DNA from: Octopus bimaculoides
Taxonomy: Eukaryota
Assembly: GCF_001194135.2 (NCBI RefSeq)
Contig: NC_068981.1
Span: forward strand, 98,669,776-98,731,789
Length of the DNA: 62,014 nt
Direction of reading: 5' to 3'
Part shown: piece after piece, positions 9,794-58,843 of the stretch
How the letters are laid out: the number at the start of each line of letters is the position of its first letter
Numbering within the stretch: position 1 is the first letter of the stretch
Notes under the pieces: model-generated
Seen by the model: only the letters and a program-made list of their open reading frames with translations
Told to the model about the DNA's origin: nothing
Database searches by the model: none
Made by a program: the position numbers and the translations under genes

Positions 9794-11748
9794 AGCAAGT
9801 CTTTATATTTTGATTTGTTTTCAGTAATTCCAAATTGAAATCTCTTTGAACATTGTTTTCTGTTTGCCTTTCTAAAGATTATTTGAAGCATCTTAGAATA
9901 CTGTAATTATTTTTATAGCTGTTTTTAAGCCTTGAGATGTGATTAGACAATATTTCTGCTTGAATCCACATTAATTTTGCAGTACATAATCAAATGTCAT
10001 ATTTATAGCAGTTAGTGCCTAAATCTTAAATAATGTTTTTATACGTTAGATTTTCATGAACAGTAAGAAGTTTGAATTGTTATAAGTATTTTAAAACTTT
10101 ATACATATGACTTTAACTACTGTGGATGTATCGAAGTTTAAACTCAAGCTCTTGTTTTTTAAATCCCAAAATGTTAATTATCTTTTATTGCTTTATTTGT
10201 AAACCAAAAAGACACTTTTATATCTTATTCTATGAAATTTCTGGTTATTTTCAATGGAAAGTTTTCAAAGTTCTGTTTACTATTTTTTAATCAGGAAGTG
10301 TCAATGTATAGCTTAATGGCCATTTTAGTACTTAATTTGATTTCAGTTATCCTTTGTGTAGAAAGTTATTTCTTCATAACATTTTTTTCTTTATGTGGTT
10401 TAAGAGTTGTTGCTAAGTCTTTGGTTTTGTCTTTATAAATCAATTTCTTGCCTGTTTAAAGCATACTGAGAAGAATTTTCATATCTGATGTGGTTTAGTA
10501 TTCATGTGAATCAGTGACTGTGGTTAAGGTACTGGGCTTTGAGCCCAGAATGTTCTGTTGCTTAGACCTCATTGCATTTGCTTCTGTAAACCTAGCTGAA
10601 AATATGTACCATGTCCACTTCATAGTTGGATATTAACGTATTCAGTCGGTGCCAATATTTTAATTCGTAGAAACATCTGTTAGCATGGTAAAAGGTTTTC
10701 TATTGAATTTGAAGGAAAACAACAGCATGAACATGAATTAGATTTTATAAAAATAGAACGTGTAGTATTAACTATTATAAAGTGTTTTTAAAGGTTTGTT
10801 TTCTTTTATGTCAGTTATCTAAATTAAAACTCATTACTAAGTAGAAATTTAATCATTCACCACTCTCTATTTAATCTTTATACTTTTCTTTCTCCTTACT
10901 CTCAAATTTTTGATATTACTAAAAGCATAACAACTATATGTTTGTTCAATTTTCTATTGTGCTGTTTGAAAATTTGGTTTGAAGTAGAAATTTCTATGTA
11001 ATAAAATTCTTAAATAAGTTAATTAGGGATGCTGATAGTTTGAAAATGTAACACCAACTTTTTCATGTTTCTTAATAAAAAAAAAATTATTTTGCAAGTT
11101 TATGAATTATATTTAAACTGATTTCAATGTTTCTAAGATATGTATGATTGTTACTATTATGTATTCCACTCAATATATATTCAGAAGTATTATTTCTTTG
11201 AAGTTTCACATGGATGAAGATGCACAAATTATCTATTTTATGGTTTCTTGATGAAAATAGTTCAGCCGCATGTGCAAACTTGTTTATCTACATCAGGTTA
11301 AATTGGATCGTTATCAATGAAGAAGTCTCATTTTTTTTTTATTATTCACTGAAACTCTAATATATATTTATATATACATATATATATATATACATGTATG
11401 TATATATATATATATACATATGTGTATATAAATACATAATGTAAATCTCAAAAAATTTTGCATTCCAGTTTCTGTTATTTGCACATGTTGATATAAATGC
11501 ATGCAAACACTATTTTGTTAAACTAGTTATTGAGATTAAGATGAGCCATGCCAAATCAGTTTGATCTTAGTGATTTGTGATATTTGCCTTCTTACAGAAG
11601 TCTTACCCTATTAGCTATAGTCACTGTTAATTCCACTAACTATTAATGTAACTCTTAATTCATTGATGATCATGTAGCACCATGCTTATTTACTGATTAT
11701 CATTGTTATTCAGGGTTGTACTTCGGCATCTGACGACCAGGGTACTCT

Positions 11749-11847
11749 ATGCTTGAAGTGCATAGCGAAGTATGCTAGTAAGACTGATGACTTTTTGTCT
11801 CTGCTCTCAGACTTACTGGCGTGCGTATCGCCATTCACTGTTGTCAT
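11749..11847 (+). ncRNA. pri-miRNA-like hairpin HP1 (candidate Drosha substrate)
   Basis: Manual pairing of arms 11757-11787 and 11807-11839, including 13 contiguous pairs (11770-11782 with 11812-11824, G:U allowed) and a 19-nt apical loop. Confidence 0.5.
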
Positions 11848-11878
11848 CTGGTCCGGCAGAGGCGAGGGCTGTCACACA

Positions 11879-11964
11879 TTGCACTCTCCTCTTGACCATG
11901 GTCGAGCCGGGTAGATTCTGTTATAACCCACCCCTTGACTTTCTGGTCATGTAGGAGGTCGCAA
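11879..11964 (+). ncRNA. pri-miRNA-like hairpin HP2 (candidate Drosha substrate)
   Basis: Manual pairing gives about 29 bp: TTGC/GCAA, TCTCCT/AGGAGG, TGACCA/TGGTCA, GGTCGAG/CTTGACT, GGGT/ACCC. Confidence 0.42.
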
Positions 11965-14900
11965 CACCTCAATTCTTGGACCTGGTGGCATCTCTGACTA
12001 CATACTTGTTGTGGCCTTGTGTTTCTGTCTACTGCTAACATTTACTGCTGAGTGTCTGCCTTGGTTTAGTGAACATCTACATTGTGTATGATCATCAGAA
12101 TCAGCATTTTTCATGGAATACTTCAAGTATTTTGATGCACTGCTTGTGATCCTGTACTGGAGTAAGTATAAATGCTTTGTGAGTCAATGTTTAGTTAGAG
12201 CAGATGTCATGGGGTCTATCATGTTTATATAATGTTAACAGATTTAATATTCTCGACCCCACTGTATCTGTAAAAATCTTTGTAAACATTTTTATTTATT
12301 TTTACTTCAGTTTTTTTTTTTTCATTTTAAGTCATTTTAATGTTTTATTTTAATTTCTTCAAAATTTAGTTTGAGTTGTCATTGAATATTCTTAGAGAAA
12401 ATTAATTTTATAATGAGTAAAACATGAAAGCATTTTTATATACTTCTCTTCCAAATTATGAGAAAAATCATAGAGATAGTAGCTGAACTGGTTAGTTTAG
12501 TGAATTGTGTTACCTAATGAAGTTAACTAAAATTTACATACTAACTTAATGTCAATGTTTACGATCAGTATTTGAAAGGATTAATTTTCAGGGATTCTAA
12601 TCTCAGATTAACCATTTTGATTCCAAGCTGCCTCTGGTTCACTAATATGAACCTTCCATCATAATTTTATTTAAGAAAATTTCCTAAGTTAAGTTTTAAG
12701 TATCTTAATAATGAAATTAGATATTTTACTAAACTCATTCAAAATTTTTCTATTTGTTTTCAAAATTAATTGAAACACATGAACAGTGTATTTCATTAGA
12801 AATATTATAACAAAACATTGGAATGATCTATTTGAGAACAGGAGATCTGATTGCAACAAAATGATTGACGTCTCTTTTGAGGAAAAAAAGTAATTTTGGT
12901 AATTTGAGGTGTTCTAAACATGTCAGAATTGTTTAATTGCTACTAAAGACAAACCAACACTGGCTAATACAATGAAATAGCTATTAAGTATTAAGAATTA
13001 GTATAATCAAAAGTGCATGAGCATACACGCATACTCATTTAAATATTTGTCTTTTGAAATAGTCAAGACTTTATAAAAACTTTACCTTTTCTTATAAAAT
13101 CATAGGTAAAGCTAATCATTATATATAAATGCTTCTACATTGCATTATAAAGTTAAAGCAAGTTCAAGAAATATTGATATTGTTTATGTATTAGGATTAC
13201 ATAAGACTACTTTATATTCTGTCCTGGTAAACTGTGGGGTTTTGCTTAGATCATTTTCATCCTCAAAGTTGTTTTATAATTCTTTCCAAGAATTTGTAAA
13301 GTAGGAATTACAGTTGTTAGATCAGGAATGCATAAAAAGTCTTTCATTTTTATTTTTGCAGAAGTTCAGGAGTTATTTTAGCAAATTGACATAATTGGTT
13401 CACCACCAAAATTGGGTGATTTTTCAGTCAAACCAAGTGAGTTTGAATTTACACACTTTTAATATAGTCAATTTATTTAATTAGTTAATAATTTTTGAAA
13501 ACCCTCCTACTTTAAGATGTTCTTGCATAATGCAAAAAGGTTAAAAAGCACAAAAAAAAAAAATTTACAAAACTTTGCATTGGTATTTTTCAGAAAATGT
13601 AGTAGTTCCACTGTAAAATTTTTGCTTAACTTAAAATCTTGTCGAGCTACTCTTAAATTGGTTAATACATGTGTTAGAGACTGAACAAAAGCCTTGTAGC
13701 TGTTACAATTCTACATTTCTGCATATATTTTATATTTATGTCTTTTGGATTGAAATCGTTATTTGATCACATCCCACAAAATCAGAATGTTCTTACTCAT
13801 CTGAGGATGATCAAAGAATATTCTGATTTAACTATAAAATGAAAGATGAGAACGTTTAAATCATTAGTAGTCATGTGGTTTGTGAATTTTAGTGGACAGT
13901 TTGTCTAGAAAATTTTTTAGAATAAAATCAAAGCTAGAATCTTCTAAAAAGTAGTGTCAGTGATAACATCTCACATTTTTATAGAAGAATGATGGGCATA
14001 TGTTTTGGGTTAAGGTTAGCTATTGATTCTGCTATTGATCTATAAACTAAAGCTGTGAGCAAAAGATAAGTCATTGGTGAATGATGTAAGGACATAGTGG
14101 ATTAAAATGCAAGCAATAATGATGAAATATTTGCAGAATGGAGGTACTTTTTTTTTTGTAGAAGAAAAACAATTGTTTATTTGCCTTCTTGGGATAAGAA
14201 TATGTAACAAGTATTAATATCAAAAATCTGTAGTAGCTGTAAAGTTGTAATGAAATAATGTTAATGCATTAGTTTGAAATAATATGGTTAAAGAATCAAA
14301 TTACTGGTGGATTTTTGAGTTGGAATTTTAAAATGAAAATACAAAAGTTTGAGCAATATCTATGTAGGAGTTTATGTAAATGTTTAACATGTCGTATTTA
14401 AATACTTTGCTGGTGTTAAAGTTCATTTACTCTGTTTTCAGATGTTTTCTGCTAGTAGATATATTTCAAAATAACCAAATCCTGTTTTGGATATAAACTT
14501 TATTGGTATAACTTTATAAATACATCGACACTCCAAATTGTTTTATGTTTCCCTTGTCAATACTGCACCATACATTCTAGACCACAAATGTTTTACTGAC
14601 CCTACAGAAACAGCACATATAGCTACTCAGTATCTATATTATTGTATACCCTTTAATCTTTGTTGTCTCTTGTTCACAAGATATTATTTGGCAGGAGTAT
14701 ATTACCTTCAAATAGCTAAAAAAAAAAAATGTTATTTCTTTGGTAATTTGTATAACAAATTATTGGGTAAAATGAATATGCCTTAAGTAAAATTTGTTTA
14801 TTTGCAGAACTTGGTGAGCTAACATGTAATCAGATTGTTCTCCTCAGCTCTTTCAGTGATGTTAGCGAATAGATATTGAGTGAGATATGCTTGTATACAA

Positions 14901-20274: not shown

Positions 20275-21536
20275 GTAAGTATTGAGGTGGTCCTCAAGGA
20301 TGGATGGGTTGACTAACTGCTCCATCTTTCACAATATCTCTTTCTTACTCTGCTACTTATTAATTTCTTTCTTTTTGTCCGTATCTAACTAGTTGCTCCC
20401 TATTCCTTTTAAATGTATTCATGAAATAGGCAATGCTAATAGACTCATCACCTCAGATCTTGTTAGAATTGGAAAAGTAAGAAACCCCTTCCTTTCTCCT
20501 CAGTTTCAATATTTTTTCTTAACGGACCTTGACCTTCATCTTTACATTAAGGTAAAAACAAAGATATATAAGTACAGGATCACATGCAGCTTTATTGTTG
20601 TTGTTCTTGTTATACCTTTTTAAGGTTTGGCCTGTTTTTTTAGAATTACTTGATTTTAAAAACTAATGCTTCCTACATTTACTAGCATTTGCTGTTGTGT
20701 TTGTTTGTTTGTTTGTGTATGTGTGTGTATGTCATATATGTATATATGCATACGTACATAGATGATAGAGTTTACAATTTTTGTTAAATGAAGAGATGAG
20801 CAAAAAAGCCTTAAAGGTTCATTTTAGAAACCAATATTCATTTCTTTAAGAATTTTCTCAAATAAAGTCTTCAAAAGTGACTTAGGAAAAATATTCAAGG
20901 TAATCTCTCTCTTTCTTTCTCTCTCTCTTGTGCGTGTGTGTGTGCGTGGAAGTGGATTTGTGTGCACACACAAAACCATTCAATTTTTTTTATATATATC
21001 TTTTGATACACCTAATTCTCAAAAATACAAGAATTAAGCCTTTAAGTAGAAATATCAGATCCTGGTCGTGTTGAGTGACTTAACTTTCTCATTGCTTTGG
21101 AGTTTCCCATCATGTGTTCATCATTTATTGAATATTGGCTTCCATTGAATTCCAGTATTAATAATGTAAGATGTTGGTGTCATTTACTTAAAGAAGCCTG
21201 TTATTAGAAATGAAGTGTTAGTATGAAACTTGTTTTTCAAAACCTTTTTCATTTATTCATTTTTGTAAAAATGGTTTTTTGCTATTTATACAATAACTTT
21301 TAAGGCTGTCACATGAATTGCTGCTCAAAATTACAAATATCTACTGAATTTTTTATTTTGTCACCTAATTTTTAAAAACATTTGTATTTGTATTCAATAA
21401 AATTGTTTTTATTATCTTGATATAATTTTTTCTAAAAGAAATTTACAGTTTTATTTATTGTAATCAATCCTTCACATGCTTTCTGTAGGTAGTTTCATGT
21501 ATGGTAAGGCTAATGTAAGGGCATCTCTCTTTCCAG

Positions 21537-21713
21537 ATGAGGCTTAATTTCTTTGACTAGTTAGCAAGAGAGAGGTGGCTGAGCAGGTCTGTCCGGTTAA
21601 CAGTCCAGCTCTTTAGGAAAGAAGCTGATAGTCAAGCTTGGCTCTTTTATAGCACAGGTCCACAGCTCTGGCTTTAAGCTGTCTCATATCTACAACAAAA
21701 GTGATAAACTGCA
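21537..21713 (+). promoter_or_regulatory. 5'UTR portion of the ATG-bearing exon, with 7-codon uORF (MRLNFFD*, 21537-21560)
   Basis: Branch-point-like CTAAT at 21510-21514, pyrimidine tract tctctctttcc and AG at 21535-21536. The uORF is read directly from the sequence. Confidence 0.55.
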
Positions 21714-22272
21714 ATGGAAGTCCCTGGATCTCCATGCAATGCAGATGACGATGAAGCACAAAACAGCAATGATGAAAACTGTCAGAACCACATACTGCCA
21801 CCATCAACGCAAACGTCCAATCTAACTAATAATAAAAGGTTGTACTTTGACAGTGATGATGGTAGAAAAAACGACATAGACTATGGCTGCACTCCTGAAA
21901 AACGTCCACTAATTATGGCCCCTGTTTCTAGTGTTATTACCTGTGTTGAATCCTATTTAGACTGTGATCGAGAATCTAGACTTCCTAGTGGAGAACATTC
22001 TGCACAAACTTCTCATGTGTTTGAAATCATAGATGATATTGAACTGGATGATGATGGACTGGGTACTGATTTGAGTGCTCGGAGTTATATCTCAAACGGC
22101 CGGGAATCACTTGATCTTTCTAGCGACGATGATGATGAAGAATACTTGGATGATAACGAGGTCTATGCATGGTTGGAAGAGGGGGTTGACTCCCGCAAGT
22201 CTGGATCAGATGGAGAAACAAAAGATGACGGATCACAGGGGCCAATTGAAGTGCAAAAGATTGTTTTAAAAG
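21714..22272 (+). CDS. DGCR8: DGCR8/Pasha coding exon 1 (acidic, low-complexity N-terminus ending ...PIEVQKIVLK)
   Basis: ATG at 21714 (gcaATGG) follows an in-frame TAA at 21705-21707. Open frame to donor AG|GTAAAT at 22273 (phase 1), which splices in frame to the WW-domain exon. Confidence 0.9.
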
Positions 22273-22811
22273 GTAAATTATTATTTTTTTTTTTTTTTTT
22301 CACTTTGAAGTGCCTTTCATCCCCATAAGAAAATTTTATAATTTTTATTAATATTTCTTATCTATTATCTTGTAACTGCATTTCTTTTTAAATTACACAA
22401 CTTTCTTTCAACATCTGCTATGATATCAGATACATGAAAAACTTTGACAATTAATTTTATTCATCATTATTCCTAATTATGAGATCATTGAACTAATAAG
22501 GTTGCTTTTTATATGTATAAACCTATTTACTTTTTAAAGAACCTGCCCTGATTAAAAAAAAATTATGTAAAATTTCTTCTGATTAATACAGTCAGAATTT
22601 ACTAGCTACAACTATAGTTAATTATTTTAATCACAAATATCTTGTGAAATTAACATTAATATTATATTGTATTTAGAGCAAAATTTGGTTAATGATTTTA
22701 TACTGAATTTTAGAATCTATTCAGTTTATACCTGTATCAAACTGAACAGATTTATTTTAATAGTATTTAACAATACCTTTTCTTTTATATAAATAAAATA
22801 TATTGTTTCAG

Positions 22812-23326: not shown

Positions 23327-24239
23327 AATACTGTACTCTTCTAAGTATGGTTAGTACAAGGGTTTTGACTTTTTATGTAGCAAGTTGTCTAAGACATAAG
23401 GCAATTACTGTTTACTTTTGGGGTTCTCTTGGAAAGAAAAGGTGTAGAGGAATTGTAAAGTGTTTTTATGTCTTTTATATGGATGAGGTGCTCTGGATAA
23501 AAAAAATCTAATGTAAGGTTTGATGCTAAAAAGATGTTATGCTGTATGGTAGGAATGGAATAATATTGGCTAGTATAATGACAAAAAAAAGTCATGAAGA
23601 GACAACACAGAATTGTTTTGACAGTGCTAAAATCTTAAGGCTTTCAAAATAGGTGTTAGTGTTGTAGCTATTCATGAGCAACTTTCAGCAAATAATTTTG
23701 TTTAGAGCACAAAGAGTTTGAACTCATGCACTTACTGCAATCTATCTATCTTTACATTTTTTGTGATAATTACACATTAAAAAAGATTACTTGTATATTT
23801 GAAAACATACTGCAGGACTTGGGTTTTGTTCTTGGTCAGAGTAGATGGTGCTCCTTGTTTCAATGTTTCCACCATGTCAGTGGGTTAGTATTTACAAATG
23901 ATGTTATTGTGAAATGATTCAATCATTTTGGTCACGTATCTGAATGGCTCCTATTTAATCCTTTAAAGTTTTATGATTTATTTAGCCTACCTTAGCAAAA
24001 CATATATCTACTTGTTTAAGCCCCTGGAACAGAAAAAAGGTTACATTGCTATTCAAGTGTTTAGAAACACATTAAATTATAAAAGCTTACACCGTTACAG
24101 TATGCAACAATATGCCAGATATATTGTTGCATACTGCAACAGCAAAAGCCTTGATACCCTATAGAAAATGAATCTTTAAAAGAAAACAGTACAATGATCC
24201 TAGAATAGTTGCTGGCAATCATTTCAGTTGATCGTTTAA

Positions 24240-27315: not shown

Positions 27316-29838
27316 CACTGAACTGCAAAAGAAATGCGAGACGTGTGTGACTGCGAAATATGTTTTAATTTCATTATGTCAGAGATAAATTTTGATAAAT
27401 CTGATAAAGTCAATTTCTTGGATGCACTTGACCACAGTCTATGGGTTGTTGTCATGTGTTCCGGTAGTGGGCGGATCCAGCACATCAAGATTGTAGGGCG
27501 TGACATGTTCAGTACTGTGTATGCCCTCCCTGAGTGTTCAAAACGGCCATACACTGTTGGTACATGGAGTGCATGAGTTGGTTCACAAAAGCCTTTGGTA
27601 CCTATGCCCACACCCTGAGGAAAGCTGCCTCCAGTTCCACACGAGTTGTTGGCCTTGAGACCACCTGGTTCAGCTGTCTCTGAATTTCATCCCACAGGTG
27701 TTGAATTGGCAGGCTGAGAGCCGGCCACAGCATGGTTCTGATGTGCTGATGTAGGAAGTCCATGGCGACCCTGGCCATGTGGGAAGGAGTATTGTCCTGC
27801 TGGAACACATGGCTTTGGTGATGTGTGAAGAAGGGCATGATGTGAGGTCTTAGGATCTGGTCAATGTAGCGCTGTGCTGTGATGCCACTCCCTCTGCCTG
27901 CACCAATATTTCGGAAAATATAGGATCCAGTTCTCTGATTCAGGCCTATAGCACCCAAAACCATGATGCTTTGGCCACCCCACCTGTCTCTCTCCATGAC
28001 AAATGCATCTGTAACGACCGTGCGACCAGGAGATGGTGACGAGGAATGGCTCCTTTAGCGCATCGCATGGTCGATACAAATAAAAAACGCGAAAAGAGGT
28101 TAAATGAGTATAAGTGCCAAAAAGGAAAAAAGAGAGATACAACCGGTAGAAGGTTTAAGAGAAGGTTTTATTGATATGTCAACTTGTGTGTGTGTGAGTG
28201 TGACATATAAACATAATAATAGACAGGCCATCATGCAAACAAAGTGTATGTGTATACAAACTTGGATGTATGTGTGTGAGAGAAATACAGAGCATAGAAA
28301 AGGACGTTAGAAGAAACTCCAGGCACAAGGATGGTAAATACCAGTTCGTATTGAAGGTACACAGTAGTTGAGGTGCTGTAAGAAGTTGTGGCTGCAAGGC
28401 AGAGCCGGGGAGACACATGTCGTGTAAGAAGTTGAGGCCTCAATGCTGCGGACGGTTACTTGGTACAGGAGTTCTTGCTCGTTGTACTCGCTGTTAACCA
28501 TGGTGAAGCATTTCACAAACAGCGTGGGGAAAAGCTATGCAAGTGCTGCTGGTGGTGTGTATGTAGAGAAGTTGATGTAGACGCTAAGAAGCTGGCGGTG
28601 GCGACAAAGGAGTTTGCAGTAAGCTGTTGAACGAAGTGATGGATCTCCATGAAGCTGTGTCGTGTTGTCGCTGGAACTGGCTGTGTGCTCTGTGGCCAGC
28701 GGCTAGACCTCAGAAGGTCTAAAGCCGACTTACAATCATATGCAGAAAAGCTAGCTATTTATAAGGTACTATCGGCTCAAACAGGGGTTCAGAAAAACTG
28801 TCCCACACGACCTTATTTGAAGGCTGCAATTGGTAGGGTTGCACCCTGGTGTGAAATAGAACAAGAGACAAAAATGCACCAATACCAACCAATCAGAGTG
28901 GTGGACACAACAGGGTCCAAAAGTGCGGCCGAAGGCTAGCTGTTAACCACTACGTCCGCACTCATGTATATATAACAGAGAGAGAGAGAAGTACACTACA
29001 CATCTCTGTATCGTTCACCCCTCTTACGCCACACCCGCACTCTGCCATTCGAGGTGGAAACGCAGTACCAGCTCTCGTCAGAGAAGACTATCAACCTCCA
29101 TTGCTGGTGCTGCCAATGTCAGTGCTGTGTAACCCACTGTAGTCGTGCCTGATGGTGGCAGGCAGTGAGGACAGGCCTTCAAACAGGATAATGGCAACAC
29201 AGGTTGTTGGCAGCCAGTCAACATCTTTCTGTGCTGTCGCTGATGTGTCGCTATCCAGTGGTAATGGTCTCACGAGCTGTCATGCTGATCAGTCTGAAGT
29301 GATCACAGAGGTGTTGCAGGTGGATGAAACAGTCCTGCCTGGGCGTGGTCACCCAGGGGCGCCCTCTGCGGGCAAAGTCTGCAGTGCTGTTGGTGTTGTT
29401 GTATCGCTGTTGCAGGCGATAGATGGTGCTAACATGGACATTGTAAGCTTTCACAACAACCAGGGCATGTTGTCTTGCTTGTAATTGGCCAATAGCTTGT
29501 TCTCTCTGCACTGCTGACAATCTGGTCATACCTGATGCATCCAAATTACGAATGCCAGGAACGTGGTTCAAGTTGATTTTTATACTCATAACCTCCATGA
29601 GATGCACATGCATTTTGGTTTTCATGACAATTGTTTGCAACTGCCACCCATGGCATTCAGTGCAGCTGCGTTTTGGTGTGTCATTTCAGGGAAAGTTGAA
29701 AGGTTACCTGCGATTTGGGTTTCAGTCATAAACCAGCATGTCTTGGAATATTTACGCTTAGATCCCCGAAATAAATTTTCAGAATTTACCATATAAAAAT
29801 GACATTTGAAAAAATCGCATTTCCTTTGCGATTCAGTG
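27316..29838 (-). mobile_element. Tc1-family DNA transposon, decayed transposase (29529 to 27509), interrupted by a solo LTR
   Basis: 24-bp TIRs match at 21/24 (cactgaactgcaaaagaaatgcga vs cactgaatcgcaaaggaaatgcga), left flank TA. Motifs GRPxVTTPRQD, VFSDES, FQQDN, IQHLWD, GGHTQY*. Confidence 0.92.
28010..29000. mobile_element. 991-bp solo LTR (probably Ty3/Gypsy) nested in the Tc1 transposase
   Basis: TGTA...TACA ends and 4-bp TSD CATC (28006-28009 and 29001-29004). Removing it restores the Tc1 frame ...RKRGERYRDAFVMERD. Confidence 0.85.
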
Positions 29839-35700: not shown

Positions 35701-36069
35701 ATGACTGCAGCCATGTTAGGGCATCACCTTGAATGGTTTTAGTAGAACCAATCAACCTCAAGACTTTTTGTTATTAAGCTTAGTACTTATTCTATCAGTC
35801 ACTTTTGCTGAACTGCTAGATTATGGGGATGTAAATGCACCAACACCAGTTGTCAAGCAGTGATGGGAGACAAACATAGACACAAAGACACACACACACA
35901 CACACACAACAGGCTTCTTTCAGTTTCCGTCTATCAAATCCACTCACAATGCTTTGGTCGGCCTGTGGCTATAGTAGAAGACACTTGCCCAGTGTGCCAT
36001 GCAGTGAGACTGAACCCAGAACCATGTGGTTGGAAAGCAAACTTCTTACCACACAGCCACACCTGCACC
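35701..36069 (-). mobile_element. tRNA-derived SINE, near full length
   Basis: Same head, core and tail as 26481-26887. Confidence 0.8.
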
Positions 36070-36353
36070 TGGACATTTGTGCAATGATAAAAATCCAAAC
36101 AAAATATAAGCCTATAGAGGCAGATGAACTAACAGACACATATAGAATACAGAGAAAGTATCTAATTCTCGTGAAAATGTTATTTTCTACTTTTGATGTG
36201 ATGGCTTTATATGCAGGTAAGGATAAAACTTTGATGGAAATTAGGGAAAAACAAAACAGCCTATGCCATGAGATATGTTCAGATGTGATGGAGGTCATAA
36301 AATTGTTGACAGCTCCCTCCTTGTTGATTCACACACACATTCACATGCATAGA

Positions 36354-41488: not shown

Positions 41489-42066
41489 ATAAAGGAGAGA
41501 TACATTTTGGATAATATACTCCTTGATACAATATGCTTAACAAAAAGATGGGACGTTTACGGCAAGAAGACCTTTGATTTTAATATTTACTTGACCAAAG
41601 AAACAACTAACAACACTATATCATTTGTTTCAATGAAATTGAGCAAATTTTAAAAAAAACTGACAGAATTTTATGTTTATTACTTAATTATGATACCAAA
41701 ACAAATAGATTTATAAATCTTATGTCAAACTTTTATTGAAAACTTTCAACATGTCTGTATCCCTGCATACTTCAAATCTCTCCTTAGTGTTGTGAAACAC
41801 ATTCAGTTAGCATTTCAGGAGTTAGCTCCTGCACTGCTAACTGAATGTGTTCTTTAAGCTCAGCTAAATGGTCGCTTCATCTTAGAAATGGAGGTAAAGA
41901 AAATGATTGCTGCCAAAAGTGAGTTTAAAAAAATTATACATTAATCTCTATTTTTGTAAGCTGTCTTAATTTTTGTATGCAGTGTAAATGAACCAAATAG
42001 AAGCACATGTACATACTGCTAATTTAACAGTAAATGCCACAATAATTATTATAGATAAATTTCTTA

Positions 42067-42327: not shown

Positions 42328-43832
42328 CATCATCATCATCATCATCATCATCGTATAACGTCCGCTTTCCATGCTAGCATGGGTTGGACGATTTGACTGA
42401 GGACTGGTGCAACCGGATGGCTACACCAGGCTCCAATCTAATTTGGCAGAGTTTCTACAGCTGGATGCCCTTCCTAACGCCAACCACTCAGAGAGTGTAG
42501 TGGGTGCTTTTACGTGTCACCCGCTCGAAAACGGCCACACTCGAAATGGTGTCTTTTATGTGCCACCCACACAAGAGCCAGTCCAGGGGCACTGGCAAAG
42601 ATCTCGCTCGAAAACCCTACAAGGCCAGTCAGGCGGTACTGGNNNNNNNNNNNNNNNNNNNNNNNNNNNNNNNNNNNNNNNNNNNNNNNNNNNNNNNNNN
42701 NNNNNNNNNNNNNNNNNNNNNNNNNNNNNNNNNNNNNNNNNNNNNNNNNNNNNNNNNNNNNNNNNNNNNNNNNNNNNNNNNNNNNNNNNNNNNNNNNNNN
42801 NNNNNNNNNNNNNNNNNNNNNNNNNNNNNNNNNNNNNNNNNNNNNNNNNNNNNNNNNNNNNNNNNNNNNNNNNNNNNNNNNNNNNNNNNNNNNNNNNNNN
42901 NNNNNNNNNNNNNNNNNNNNNNNNNNNNNNNNNNNNNNNNNNNNNNNNNNNNNNNNNNNNNNNNNNNNNNNNNNNNNNNNNNNNNNNNNNNNNNNNNNNN
43001 NNNNNNNNNNNNNNNNNNNNNNNNNNNNNNNNNNNNNNNNNNNNNNNNNNNNNNNNNNNNNNNNNNNNNNNNNNNNNNNNNNNNNNNNNNNNNNNNNNNN
43101 NNNNNNNNNNNNNNNNNNNNNNNNNNNNNNNNNNNNNNNNNNNNNNNNNNNNNNNNNNNNNNNNNNNNNNNNNNNNNNNNNNNNNNNNNNNNNNNNNNNN
43201 NNNNNNNNNNNNNNNNNNNNNNNNNNNNNNNNNNNNNNNNNNNNNNNNNNNNNNNNNNNNNNNNNNNNNNNNNNNNNNNNNNNNNNNNNNNNNNNNNNNN
43301 NNNNNNNNNNNNNNNNNNNNNNNNNNNNNNNNNNNNNNNNNNNNNNNNNNNNNNNNNNNNNNNNNNNNNNNNNNNNNNNNNNNNNNNNNNNNNNNNNNNN
43401 NNNNNNNNNNNNNNNNNNNNNNNNNNNNNNNNNNNNNNNNNNNNNNNNNNNNNNNNNNNNCCCACTACTAACTTGGTCACCCAGATAGCGGAAGCTATCA
43501 ACTACCTCTAGTTTTTCTCCCTGGAATGAGATAGAAGTTGTTTCCTGTTTGTTTACAGTGTTTATTGCACCTGAACATCTGCCACATACAAAAACTAACT
43601 TTGTAGTTAATCTGCCTTTGATATTGCTGCACCTCTTATGTGTCCATAGCTTGCACTGGGTACATCTTATAGAGTTACTACCTACTCCTTTACTGCATAC
43701 TGAGCAGGGCCATCTACCTGAAGGGGTTTGTGTTTTATCTACCTTCCTACTTATTAGGATTTTGGTTTTTGCTAGGTTGACTCCGAGGCCCTTCGATTCT
43801 AGTCCTTGCTTCCACACCTTAAACTTCTCCTC
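42328..43832 (-). mobile_element. Young 5'-truncated RTE LINE spanning an assembly gap; ORF2 piece with PHD-type finger
   Basis: Open frame EEKFKVWKQGLESKGLGVNLAKTK...CSVC...CTQC...H..C...CGRC...LEVVDSFRYLG; 3' end identical in kind to other copies. Confidence 0.9.
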
Positions 43833-44237
43833 GGCCATAAAGATGGAAACTTGCCTATGCGTAACGTTGTTCGCATTAGGATATAATTCAAATATAATAG
43901 AAATAAGATAATCTTGGTGTTATCACATTGGAATTAAAAGTGAAACAATATTATAGTCTTATCACATTAGAATTAAAAATGAAAGAATAAAAGTGAAATA
44001 ATATTATATCATTACAATATAGATCTTATTTTCTCACGTTTGACATGTAATACTGAACCAGTCTAAAAGATTGCTCCAGGCTTGCATTAGGCAAGAAGTT
44101 GAAAATTTTTTTGGCCCATGACACTCCATGGAACCCAAGTAATGTATGTGTAAAATTTGAATGAAATCTGTTGGGTACTTCTCGAGTTTTAGGGATTCAC
44201 ACAGACAGACAGACACACATTCTCAGTTTTATATATA

Positions 44238-45190: not shown

Positions 45191-45485
45191 CATCATCATC
45201 ATCATCATCATCATCGTTTAACGTCCGCTTTCCATGCTAGCATGGGTTGGACGATTTGACTGAGGACTGGTGAAACCTGATGGCAACACCAGGCTCCAAT
45301 CTAATTTGGCAGAGTTTCTACAGCTGGATGCCCTTCCTAACGCCAACCACTCAGAGAGTGTAGTGGGTACTTTTACGTGTCACCCGCACAAAAACGGCCA
45401 CGCTCGAAATGGTGTCTTTTATGTGCCACCCGCACAAGCCAGTCCAGGGGCACTGGCAACGATCTCACTCGAAAATCCTACGGGA
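45191..45485 (-). mobile_element. RTE LINE 3' end running into a gap
   Basis: Nearly identical to 42328-42642. Confidence 0.88.
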
Positions 45486-47789: not shown

Positions 47790-49720
47790 CAGCATTTTAT
47801 TAATTAGTTTGACAGGTGGAAGGAGCTGTGTTAATGTCCAGAGAATTGGTGGGGTTAATGTTTTTGAATATTAACCACTGGGTACAGAAAGATATGGTAG
47901 GGAGGGAATTCCAGAGGAATGATATTTTGGGAGAAAATGTCTGGACAAACTGCTTAGCATGGGACCTGAGGGGAAAAGAGTGGACACAATATGGGTGATG
48001 AAAACAGGAGAGATGAATGAGTTGGGAGGACCTCAGTAAAAGTGACACAGATCCAGCTAGTTTCAAGTAGTAATGGTTGTAAAGGCAGAATGAAGGGAAA
48101 GCACATCTGTTAGCCTAGAGCAGGGGTCACCAAACTACAGCCCACAGGCCGGATCTGGCCTGCCGCTGCATTGTACCTTTTGTGTAAGTACCTGCAATGA
48201 GAGTTAATTCCTGCAGCGATCATGTTTTAACTTGCATTGTTGTGTTAAAACTGGTTTGAAGAGTGCCATATATAAAAGGGAATGACTTCAGTGAATTATG
48301 TCATATATTTTGCATATTTGACTGTTGAAAGAACTCACAAGAGAGAAGCATCTAATAGTTTCAAACTTTGATATTCATTCAAGTCCTATATAAGCGCCCT
48401 GTTTATACACTGCATTATTCATCAGTAAAGCACTCTGTTGGAAAAACTTAGATATTTCTTCTGTACTGAGACCTGTCATTTCTGTGGTGAATTTCATTCG
48501 GGGTCATGCAATTAATCACTGCCAGTTCCAGGCTTTTCTTGAAGAAATTGATTCTGAATTCTGTGATATGCCTTATAACACAGCAGTGAGATGGCTTAGC
48601 TGCTGTAAAGTCCTGTTTCGTTTTTATAAGCTCCAAAGAGAAATAGATATTCTCACCGAAAAGGATAGAGCTGATCTCCTTCTGTCAGATCCTACTTGGC
48701 TGTCAAAGTTGTCATTTTTGGTTGATATCACATCCCTCATGAATGAATTGAACTTGAAACTTCAAGAAAAGGATAACCTTATCTGTGATCTTTACAGAAT
48801 CATCAAGGATTTCAGAGAAAGCTATCATTGGAAGGAGGAAACTTCTTTCATTTTCAATGTTTCAAAGAGTTTTAAGCTGGAATTGCAGATGTCAACTTTG
48901 AGTTTCCAAAAGAAGATTATTTGTGACTTAAATAAGCATTTTTTGGAGAGATTTTCAAATCTCAACAAAATTGTGAGTGACATTCTGTTCCAGAATCTGT
49001 TTGATTATAACCTTGATGATATGCCAGTCAAACTACAGTTGAAGTTCATTAATTTGCAAGCAAATGACTTGTTGAAAGAGAAGCACAGAGAAGGAAAACT
49101 TGTTGAATTTTGTTGCTGCTTACTTGATAATGACCTTTCAGAGTTGAAGAAATTTGCCTCTAGTATGGCATCAATGTTTGGAACAACTTATGTATGTGAG
49201 CAAGTATTTTCAAAAATGAAGTATGTGAAGTGAGCACATCGAACAAGGTTGACTGATGAACATTTGAAAGCAATTCTCTTGGTTGGTTGCAACAATTCCA
49301 AAGCAAATGTTGATGATATCTTAAAAGCTAAATACCAGTTTCACAAATCACACTAATCTTTTTTGCTGCTTAGTTTGTGAGATTCGGATATGTGCACACT
49401 GGGTGTGATATAACTTATTGCTAATGTCACCTTTTTTGATAACCTTTTGGTAAATAGATATGTTGGTTGTTTTTATTTTTTGTGTATTTGTTGTATTGCA
49501 TTGAATGAGATGGTTAAGCGGCTCACGCGCATCACTCTCTCAGTTATCCAACCCACTGTGTTTGGTGACCTCTGGCCTAGAGGCTGGTGTGTTTTGCTGA
49601 GCAACTTCATGCTAATCAGTTCAGTTGCTTTTTTTCTTTTTTTTTTGTCATCATATCCAAGTTTAGGAGAAGAATTAAGTTGTACTGTTACAAAAAGGAT
49701 ATTACATTTTTGTGCCTCTT
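47790..49720 (-). mobile_element. Decayed CR1/L2/Jockey-group LINE 3' fragment, split by the hAT element
   Basis: Minus frames give ...QPL(A)NRCAFPSFCLYNHYY (PLxHRR-like) and HPYCVH...FSPKISFLWNSLP. The frame continues across the hAT insertion site. Confidence 0.6.
48121..49574 (+). mobile_element. hAT (Charlie/Buster/SPIN-GTF2IRD2-like) DNA transposon, internally deleted
   Basis: TIRs CAGGGGTCACCAAAC / CAGAGGTCACCAAAC (14/15) and perfect 8-bp TSD GCCTAGAG (48113-48120 and 49575-49582). Transposase C-terminal part 48484-49356 has VRWLS and MFGTTYVCEQVFSKMK motifs, with a stop at 49231-49233. Confidence 0.95.
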
Positions 49721-52351: not shown

Positions 52352-53836
52352 GTAAGTAAATTTATATTATGCCTTTTGTCATGGAAGTTTGCTTGTGGCA
52401 AACTTCATCATCAACATTACCATCATCATGCATCTGTTTTCCCATGGATTGAATTTGATGTATTTGATATTTCTCTCTATCAATTTTCACATTTGAGTAA
52501 CATTCTTTGCATTAATTGCAAAAAATTGCCTATGGAAGTAACTCAAGTGGAGCAATTGGATGATTTTAGATAATTCAAGTAGATAGTGATCTACTGAATA
52601 ACACAATTCATATTGTCATGCATTAATACAAAATTTTCCTCATTCTCTCATATAGCATATCAAAATTGTTTGAGATGATTCTGCAAATTTTAAAAGTTTG
52701 CAGCAAATTTACAACATAAATACTTTGCTATTTCTAAAATGTTGAAAAAAGGGATATCCTTTAACCCCAAAAAGTCAATTTTTCTTTATTTAAGTGTGTG
52801 TGCGTGTGCGCGCGCACACACACACACTTAAAATGAGTTTCTTTGGTTAGAGGATATTCCTATTAAATACAAATGCACTTTTCATCAGTGTGTTTATATA
52901 TATATGTGTGTATACACATGTATACATACCTAAGTTTATTTTTCTGTTAAAAGTATTTTCCCGAAAACAATTTATATGAATTAAAGTCCTTTTGAATTAA
53001 TAATGAAAAAAATTTGAAACAGCTTGAGAGGCAACAAAAAGAAGGTCCAGTAAAAGGAGATGAAAATTTGACATTTTCATTCCTATTTCATGCTGTCCTT
53101 TTTAATTGGTTTGTCAGAGAAGGGTATTGGCCATGGTCCTTTCCAAAATCTTTGAGAGTGGTGGTGGTGGTAGGAGGAAGTTATCTGAATTCTTGCAGTG
53201 TTGTGAATTCTGTTTCAGGTGGTCTTCCATACCATTTCCATCTACCATATAAGATTTTTGGGGTCCATGCAACAAAATAGTAAATTGGGGATCCACATTG
53301 TATTTCAAGAGCCCCTGAAAAAATTTTTGCTTTAGATCTATGTATCGATATGTATTGCAAGAAACAGCCAGATTTCTTTCTTTAAAGTTTTACATAGTTC
53401 AACCTACACAAGTTAATATGAAAAACAAAATAGAATTTTGAAAGAAATTTCTATAAAACTAGTTTTTAAATATTGAATGGCTATGGGAGTCCACCAGAAT
53501 AAAATAGTAATCAAAATGGTTGAGAACTCTTGCTTTAGTTGATCTGAGGTTATGGTACTGTGCAGTGGGATTGAACCCAAGCCTACATGGTTGCAAAGAA
53601 AACTTCATCACTACATAACCATACATGGATTAATTCTTATGAGTCTTTTTGAGAGGAAAAACATTCTTTTTATCAAGATTTTGAGTATTTGTTGTTTCTT
53701 TTTAAAGCTATGAAATGATTTAGCATAGAATTCTGTGGCACAATTATGACAAATAAAACTTCAGTGTTTATATCTACAAGTTTGTAACACAAAGTTCTGA
53801 TGAATACTGTTTTGGTATTCTTTTGTTTACTTACAG

Positions 53837-58285: not shown

Positions 58286-58843
58286 GGCACAGGCGTGGCT
58301 GTGTGGTAAGAAGCTTGCTTCCCAACCACATGGTTCCTAGTTCAGTCCCATTGTATGGCATCTTGGGCAAGTGTCTTCTACTACAGCCTCAGGCCGACCA
58401 AAGCCTTGTGAGTGGATTTGGTAAATAGAAACTGAAAGAAGCCCGTCATATAGGTGCAGGAGTGGCTGTGTGGTAAGTAGCTTGCTTACCAACCACATGG
58501 TTCTGGGTTCATTCCTACTGCATGGCACCTTGGGCAAGTGTCTTCTACTATAGCCTCGGGCCGACCAAAGCCTTGTGAGTGGATTTGGTAGATGGAAACT
58601 GAAAGAAGCCTGTCGTATATATATATATATGGGTGTGTGTGTTTGTGTCTGTGTTTGTCCCCCCAACATCGCTTGACAACCGATGGTGGTGTGTTTACGT
58701 CCCCATAACTTAGCAGTTTGGCAAAAGAGACTGGTAAAATAAGTATTTGGCTTACAAAGAATAAGTTGTGTGGTGAGTTTCTTCGACTAAAAAACCCTTT
58801 AAGGCAGTGCTCCAGCCTGGCCATAGCCAAATGACTGAAACAA
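58286..58843 (+). mobile_element. Tandem SINE: truncated head copy (58286-58450) followed by a full copy (58453-58843)
   Basis: Two consecutive ggtggctgtgtggtaag...gaaactgaaagaagcc units; the second continues into the tail. Confidence 0.88.

Follow-up and report, generated by a model that had tools for sequence, protein, structure and literature searches.

The octopus DGCR8/Pasha gene and its leader exon

The window (the whole stretch of 62,014 nucleotides of Octopus bimaculoides DNA analysed here) carries on its plus strand a gene that, by homology, is the octopus orthologue of DGCR8/Pasha, Drosha's partner, which recognises microRNA hairpins. Far upstream of the coding exons lies a conserved non-coding exon with two hairpins, HP1 and HP2. 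An ATG-initiated open reading frame at 21714–22328 has homologues, and its 90% cluster includes a 679-aa protein of Octopus sinensis (P0004) annotated as 'microprocessor complex subunit DGCR8-like'. The protein is present in O. vulgaris too, and two accessions exist for the same DGCR8-like protein in O. sinensis. When P0004 was searched against the plus strand of the window with tblastn, exons were placed from 21714 up to 57610, with amino acids 1–186 at 100% identity to the first coding segment (21714–22271). The protein matched the human DGCR8 chain 6lxd_B with a phmmer E-value of 8e-139, has a Pfam dsrm match (dsRBD) and retrieved DGCR8/Pasha across animals. The annotation of P0004, the mapping of its exons and the match to human DGCR8 therefore indicate that the window contains the 5′ two-thirds of octopus DGCR8. 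HP1 lies 9.9 kb upstream of the start codon (21714) on the same strand.

The hairpins are joined to the gene by an assembled mRNA contig of a distant cephalopod (L012; 3,418 nt), which has a full 709-aa DGCR8 ORF and comes from a species close to that of a 20.7-kb genomic locus (L001), not from the window's own species. In the 670-nt leader of this contig, 5′ of the ORF, window positions 11710–12161 (L012:16–466, 91% identity) are fused directly to window positions 21537–21615, and the junction reads CTGGA|ATGAGG. The block conserved in genomic DNA stops at CTGGA|GTAAGT; the splice donor GTAAGT occupies 12162–12167 (plus strand), and similarity collapses just beyond it. Both the donor and the acceptor motifs are conserved in the window. 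It follows from the mRNA junction that 11714–12161 is a 448-nt non-coding (5′UTR) exon of DGCR8/Pasha. On this transcript evidence from a related cephalopod, HP1 belongs to the sense-strand 5′ part of the mature DGCR8 mRNA.

Ahead of the exon, a conserved intron tail at 11660–11713 (plus strand) has an acceptor-like TTGTTATTCAG end, and it is from about 11660 onwards that the sequence is conserved with L001. The first ~18 nt of the mRNA contig depart from the genome right after CAG|, where the genome reads TTATTCAG|G, and these 18 terminal nucleotides have no match in the window or in L001. The divergence reflects either a further upstream exon or an artefact of the contig end. The TTGTTATTCAG|G end and the 18 unmatched nucleotides tentatively suggest that the hairpin exon is an internal, possibly alternative, 5′UTR exon. 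The 5′UTR portion of the ATG-bearing exon (21537–21713, plus strand) follows a CTCTCTTTCCAG acceptor and opens with a conserved 7-codon uORF (ATGAGGCTTAATTTCTTTGACTAG, 21537–21560, plus strand). About 66 nt around this acceptor (21497–21563, plus strand) are almost invariant across cephalopods; the island has a branch-point-like CTAAT and a pyrimidine tract, followed by CAG|ATGAGG.

A coding reading of the hairpin block was also considered and rejected, because the longest frame across it is broken by a 1-nt indel in the HP1 loop of the distant lineage. Exact look-up of the ORFs that overlap the block returned no record, and its six-frame translation, used as a protein query, scored nothing among the matches listed.

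Fold and geometry of the hairpins

HP1 occupies 11757–11839 on the plus strand. The earlier note had paired it by hand, and each of the pairings listed there is present in the sequence: CUGA (11784–87) with UCAG (11807–10) at the top, an A11783–A11811 mismatch beneath, a core of 13 uninterrupted pairs (11770–82 with 11812–24) and a lower stem of GCGA/UCGC, AU/AU and AGUG/CACU reaching 11757/11839. RNAfold returned the same stem as its minimum-energy structure, with 27 bp, a 31-nt 5′ arm (11757–11787), a 33-nt 3′ arm (11807–11839) and a 19-nt apical loop (11788–11806), in agreement with the arm and loop lengths given by hand; the predicted 5p and 3p products lie at ~11768–11789 and ~11807–11828. 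The folding energy is −33.2 kcal/mol (z = −3.1), dinucleotide shuffles of equal stability were not obtained (0/200), and the stem is identical in the centroid structure. It is retained in genomic contexts of 150, 200 and 506 nt (11720–11870, 11700–11900 and 11660–12165), where RNAfold also recovered the longer lower pairing that had been proposed below it, and when the whole 448-nt exon is folded. The minus strand of the locus reaches −27.8 kcal/mol; it folds worse because 3 of the 13 core pairs are U·G wobbles.

The two CNNC-type motifs reported 3′ of the stem were found in place, with CATC at 11845–11848 (plus strand), which is conserved, and CGGC at 11854–57. The basal UG is present in Octopus and lost in the distant cephalopod lineage, and inspection of the sequence and alignment revealed no apical UGU at the canonical position in HP1. 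The HP1 duplex has at least 16 complementary nucleotides within a single hairpin, as in MirGeneDB-type criteria. Its 27 pairs within arms of 31 and 33 nt, its 19-nt loop and the CNNC accord with a pri-miRNA-like geometry, for which a stem of ~33–35 bp, a loop no shorter than 10 nt and single-stranded or weakly paired flanks are expected. A 100-nt sliding scan of both strands yielded ~33 non-overlapping stretches elsewhere in the window with folds at least as stable as HP1, a good number of which are TA microsatellites or come from repeats. The fold of HP1 alone is therefore weak evidence and unremarkable for this genome.

Rfam 15, searched at the gathering score over the entire window, gave no match anywhere in it, and a search of 11400–12300 at E ≤ 10 gave none on HP1 or HP2. 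Text searches of the literature with the HP1 arm sequences produced irrelevant matches only, and no match to the invariant arm turned up in the metagenome contigs scanned. A further copy of HP1 or of its exon was not found within the window. HP1 is therefore neither a repeat nor the inverted repeat of a transposon, and that reading was rejected.

The second pri-miRNA-like hairpin of the leader exon, HP2, lies at 11879–11961 on the plus strand, 40 nt downstream of HP1. Its energy is −35.5 kcal/mol (z = −2.6), a stability equalled by 4 of 200 shuffles, and in a consensus fold with the distant cephalopod three of its changes are wobble-compatible and one pair is broken. When the 3.4-kb L012 mRNA is ranked by the stability of its 100-nt windows, the top four all fall within the first 865 nt: HP1, HP2, the segment that separates these two, and a hairpin in the coding sequence that is lineage-specific. 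The last of these (L012:766–865), which starts ~100 nt past the coding start, ranks first in stability among these windows and is reminiscent of the mammalian Dgcr8 CDS hairpin; the stretch is of low complexity and poorly conserved, and no equivalent fold was seen near the octopus ATG.

Conservation of the leader exon among cephalopods

The L001 locus aligns to the window only as short islands. The strongest of these covers window positions 11647–12171 (528 nt) at 91% identity, against just 71% for the coding exon itself, and the intron that flanks the hairpin exon is unalignable between the two. The lineage of L012 lies outside the pair formed by Octopus and Argonauta. Its DGCR8 protein is 78% identical to that of Octopus and 76% identical to that of Argonauta (BLASTP), with differences at four-fold sites of 54 and 55%, respectively; Octopus and Argonauta are 89% identical in protein (BLASTP) and differ at 28.5% of four-fold sites. 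Over the whole leader exon, Octopus differs from L001 by 6.7% substitutions (7.1% from L012), so that this exon is 93% identical between cephalopod lineages in which the synonymous sites of the same gene are >50% diverged.

Within HP1, Octopus and L001 differ at 1 of 31 positions in the 5′ arm (11772, A>G), at 1 of 33 in the 3′ arm (11833, A>G) and by one substitution and a 1-nt indel in the 19-nt loop. The 43 nt that precede HP1 have diverged by 16%. The arms, with 3% divergence versus ~7% for the exon and 54% for the four-fold sites of DGCR8, are the least-diverged segments of the leader exon. The predicted 3p stretch (11807–11828) is invariant in all lineages compared, and O. sinensis and O. 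vulgaris have the window sequence throughout HP1. In O. vulgaris, HP1 falls at OX597814.1:84,517,949–84,518,031 (minus strand), as converted from locus L005. As judged from these divergences, HP1 and the leader exon are under strong purifying selection.

Both stem changes, at 11772 and 11833, convert A-U to G-U, and pairing therefore survives on the sense RNA only. HP1 is predicted in the spliced leaders of three lineages and in the consensus fold; by itself the L012 version reaches −32.3 kcal/mol (z = −2.6). The three distinct sequences provide two informative stem substitutions and 0 double compensatory changes. An exon-wide permutation test for an excess of pair-preserving substitutions was not significant (P = 0.09–0.5). 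Constraint on primary sequence must therefore act on the exon as well, and for the same reason its global minimum-energy fold is not claimed to be conserved. Folding of the 448-nt exon gave z = −2.95 on the plus strand and z = −1.37 on the minus strand, so that the sense strand outdoes its shuffles in stability and the antisense strand does not. In Argonauta hians, no hairpin exon was found in the 10 kb upstream of DGCR8 that the available sequence covers, and the UTR of the ATG exon matches at 84.5%. No comparable hairpin was found in the transcript of a non-cephalopod homologue (P0012, L014/L015), the leader of which is just ~190 nt long.

Proposed Microprocessor cleavage and rival readings of HP1

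The amount of DGCR8 sets a limit on miRNA output, and of the homeostats known for the Microprocessor the self-cleavage loop is the chief one. In mammals, Drosha-DGCR8 cleaves hairpins located within the 5′UTR and the coding sequence of the Dgcr8 mRNA, a case of autoregulation (Han et al., 2009, as cited in PMC3814725, PMC2736397 and PMC5749182). The human DGCR8 hairpins are the sources of mir-3618 and mir-1306 (PMC5749182), and the mammalian Dgcr8 hairpins yield small-RNA reads with uniform 5′ ends, a behaviour that is apparently Dgcr8-specific (PMC2736397). In Drosophila, hairpins in the 5′UTR of pasha are cut by Drosha (Smibert et al., 2011; Kadener et al., 2009, as cited in PMC5749182 and PMC3814725). 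Of the pasha foldbacks, Dmel_422 is deeply conserved and Dmel_474 belongs to the melanogaster group, and both are described as giving only low-abundance small RNAs (PMC5749182 and PMC3814725). A bacterial case is rncO of Escherichia coli, in the leader of the rnc operon, which RNase III cleaves (refs. 6 and 7 in PMC3814725).

The octopus arrangement resembles that of mammalian Dgcr8 in the orthologous host, the sense location near the 5′ end, the pri-miRNA-like geometry, the presence of two hairpins and the conservation. It differs in that sequence similarity to the octopus hairpins is undetectable, in that cleavage in the octopus is proposed by analogy, in that the octopus pair lies wholly in the UTR, with no member in the coding sequence, and in that this pair occupies an upstream non-coding exon of its own, 9.4 kb away from the one with the ATG. 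With Drosophila pasha it shares a protostome setting, the orthologous gene and two 5′UTR foldbacks, although Arthropoda and Mollusca are different phyla and the sequences are unrelated as far as compared; common ancestry and convergence are therefore not distinguishable. Canonical pri-miRNAs resemble HP1 in stem length (~33 bp-equivalents), in having a loop no shorter than 10 nt and in a CNNC that lies downstream of the 3p arm. Unlike them, HP1 is without a family match and forms part of an exon in a protein-coding host message, which cleavage would therefore destroy. The likeness to rncO is one of logic only, in that an mRNA for the machinery of an RNase III enzyme is destabilised when that enzyme cuts a stem-loop within its 5′ leader; the E. 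coli element is bacterial, involves another class of enzyme and is unrelated in structure, and it serves as an analogy only.

The features of a DGCR8 leader hairpin, namely an orthologous host, a sense 5′ location, the geometry and the conservation, are all found in HP1. Given the same host gene, place in the mRNA, strand, geometry, partner hairpin and conservation, HP1 is proposed as the cephalopod counterpart of the autoregulatory DGCR8/pasha hairpin that is cut by the Microprocessor itself, a reading that is held with moderate confidence. Since similarity to any Rfam family is undetectable, it cannot be shown that HP1 is homologous to the hairpins of vertebrates or flies. The fold of HP1, its sense 5′UTR location, the identity of its gene and the strong purifying selection are established here, and HP1 is probably a Microprocessor substrate; that Drosha cleaves it, and that cleavage affects the DGCR8 level, we infer by analogy with mammals and flies. 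A search of the available literature for a DGCR8 leader hairpin in molluscs found no report, and a survey of the bivalve miRNA machinery is without mention of one. Whether the octopus locus represents a self-cleavage loop in Lophotrochozoa, built on pri-miRNA-like hairpins in tandem within a leader exon of 448 nt that is near-ultraconserved, is judged an even call.

In the proposed mechanism, abundant Drosha-DGCR8 would bind HP1, and probably HP2 too, like a pri-miRNA. The cut positions were predicted by the rule of 11 bp from the basal junction: the Microprocessor would cut HP1 ~11 bp above that junction, near 11767/11768 and 11830/11831, which would place the conserved CATC ~17 nt 3′ of the predicted 3p cut (+17), within the usual CNNC window. 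Such a cut would part the capped leader from the coding body, the mRNA would be degraded and DGCR8 output would fall, with homeostatic negative feedback on the Microprocessor as the net effect. The excised hairpin of ~63 nt may give low-abundance small RNAs as a by-product, and a mature trans-acting miRNA from HP1 is possible in the same capacity.

The pri-miRNA reading of the earlier note thus stands as regards geometry and falls as regards an orphan miRNA gene, since HP1 sits in a 5′UTR exon of DGCR8/Pasha. A stand-alone gene for a trans-acting miRNA, to which the location in DGCR8 would be incidental, would account for the pri-miRNA-like geometry and for the invariance of the predicted 3p arm (11807–11828), and small RNAs are plausible because the human DGCR8 hairpins are themselves annotated as mir-3618 and mir-1306 (PMC5749182). 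It is nevertheless considered very unlikely. No Rfam miRNA family matched even at E ≤ 10, the 12-mers of the HP1 arms and the 8-mers of candidate seed sites are absent from an incomplete set of supplements to an octopus miRNA survey (PMC9699675), and with 3% divergence in the arms and ~7% in the exon the contrast of arm versus flank that is typical of miRNA genes is missing. In addition, the product of the hairpin in the mammalian 5′UTR is restricted to the nucleus (PMC2736397). Equally unlikely is a chance hairpin, in which the exon would be conserved for unrelated reasons and the stem would be an accident of a 448-nt, GC-richer sequence. Folds of similar quality do turn up in the window at a rate of about one per 2 kb, and the substitutions are too few to prove covariation, but none of 200 composition-matched shuffles folded as well, the stem persists through 54% neutral divergence with changes to wobble pairs only, folding favours the sense strand for both HP1 and the exon, and the arms are the least-diverged segments of that exon. 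A host gene such as DGCR8 would moreover be a striking coincidence.

A structured 5′UTR element that acts without Drosha, through translational control with uORFs, as a protein platform, as an ADAR substrate or in the control of exon inclusion, is regarded as unlikely, if less so than the two preceding readings. Constraint spans the entire 448-nt exon, beyond HP1, and the substitutions in the exon are not structure-preserving, which suggests a readout of primary sequence; the next exon opens with a conserved uORF, and the two O. sinensis accessions for one protein hint at alternative UTRs. Cephalopods have heavy RNA editing, and the two changes in the stem, each A↔G, bear the mark to be expected where an edited site becomes hard-wired. 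None of these roles, however, predicts a hairpin of Microprocessor length with a CNNC at +17 or a location in a gene that is self-cleaved in two other phyla, and all are compatible with Drosha cleavage rather than exclusive of it. The exon-wide constraint favours another UTR function in addition to cleavage by Drosha, rather than one that replaces it. On the preferred reading, that of a Microprocessor-cut leader hairpin, HP1 looks like a known type of DGCR8 hairpin that is new in cephalopods and not like a stand-alone miRNA gene.

Cephalopods have a greatly expanded miRNA repertoire, and if the proposed loop is real, they would gain a tightly constrained governor of their miRNA-processing capacity. 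The loop, shown experimentally in mammals and Drosophila, would then extend to a third major animal branch. With all three great bilaterian branches represented, it would be either ancestral to Bilateria or have at least three origins in the same gene, and ancestry versus convergence would become testable. The loop would account, too, for the place of a 448-nt non-coding exon among the slowest-evolving sequences at the DGCR8 locus. For annotation, the host transcript should be inspected before such a hairpin is named a 'novel miRNA gene'.

Other features of the window were noted in passing. It comes from a draft animal assembly and has nine N gaps and plentiful TA repeats. An ORF translation beginning MQPDGYTRLQSNLAEFLQLDALPNANHSE occurs twice in near-identical form beside N gaps (42407–42640 and 45270–45480, plus strand), as does another that reads GYSRRHLP.VPCS..EPRTMWL.SKLLTTQP (35949–36100, plus strand, and 58337–58600, minus strand). 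By their recurrence, these translations look like dispersed repeat families within the DGCR8 introns. Among the long intronic ORFs, that at 42510–43838 (minus strand) has a PHD-finger match (E = 3e-6) and an N gap that interrupts it, and those at 27602–27997 (minus strand) and 48484–49233 (plus strand) are transposase-like by eye, with no Pfam match at E ≤ 0.01. Four hairpins that are not microsatellites and exceed HP1 in stability lie at 24051–24150, 41791–41890 and 52761–52860 on the minus strand and at 53151–53250 on the plus strand. These four have energies of −36 to −44 kcal/mol and near-perfect stems of 18–24 bp, and may be inverted repeats of transposons or candidates of another kind.
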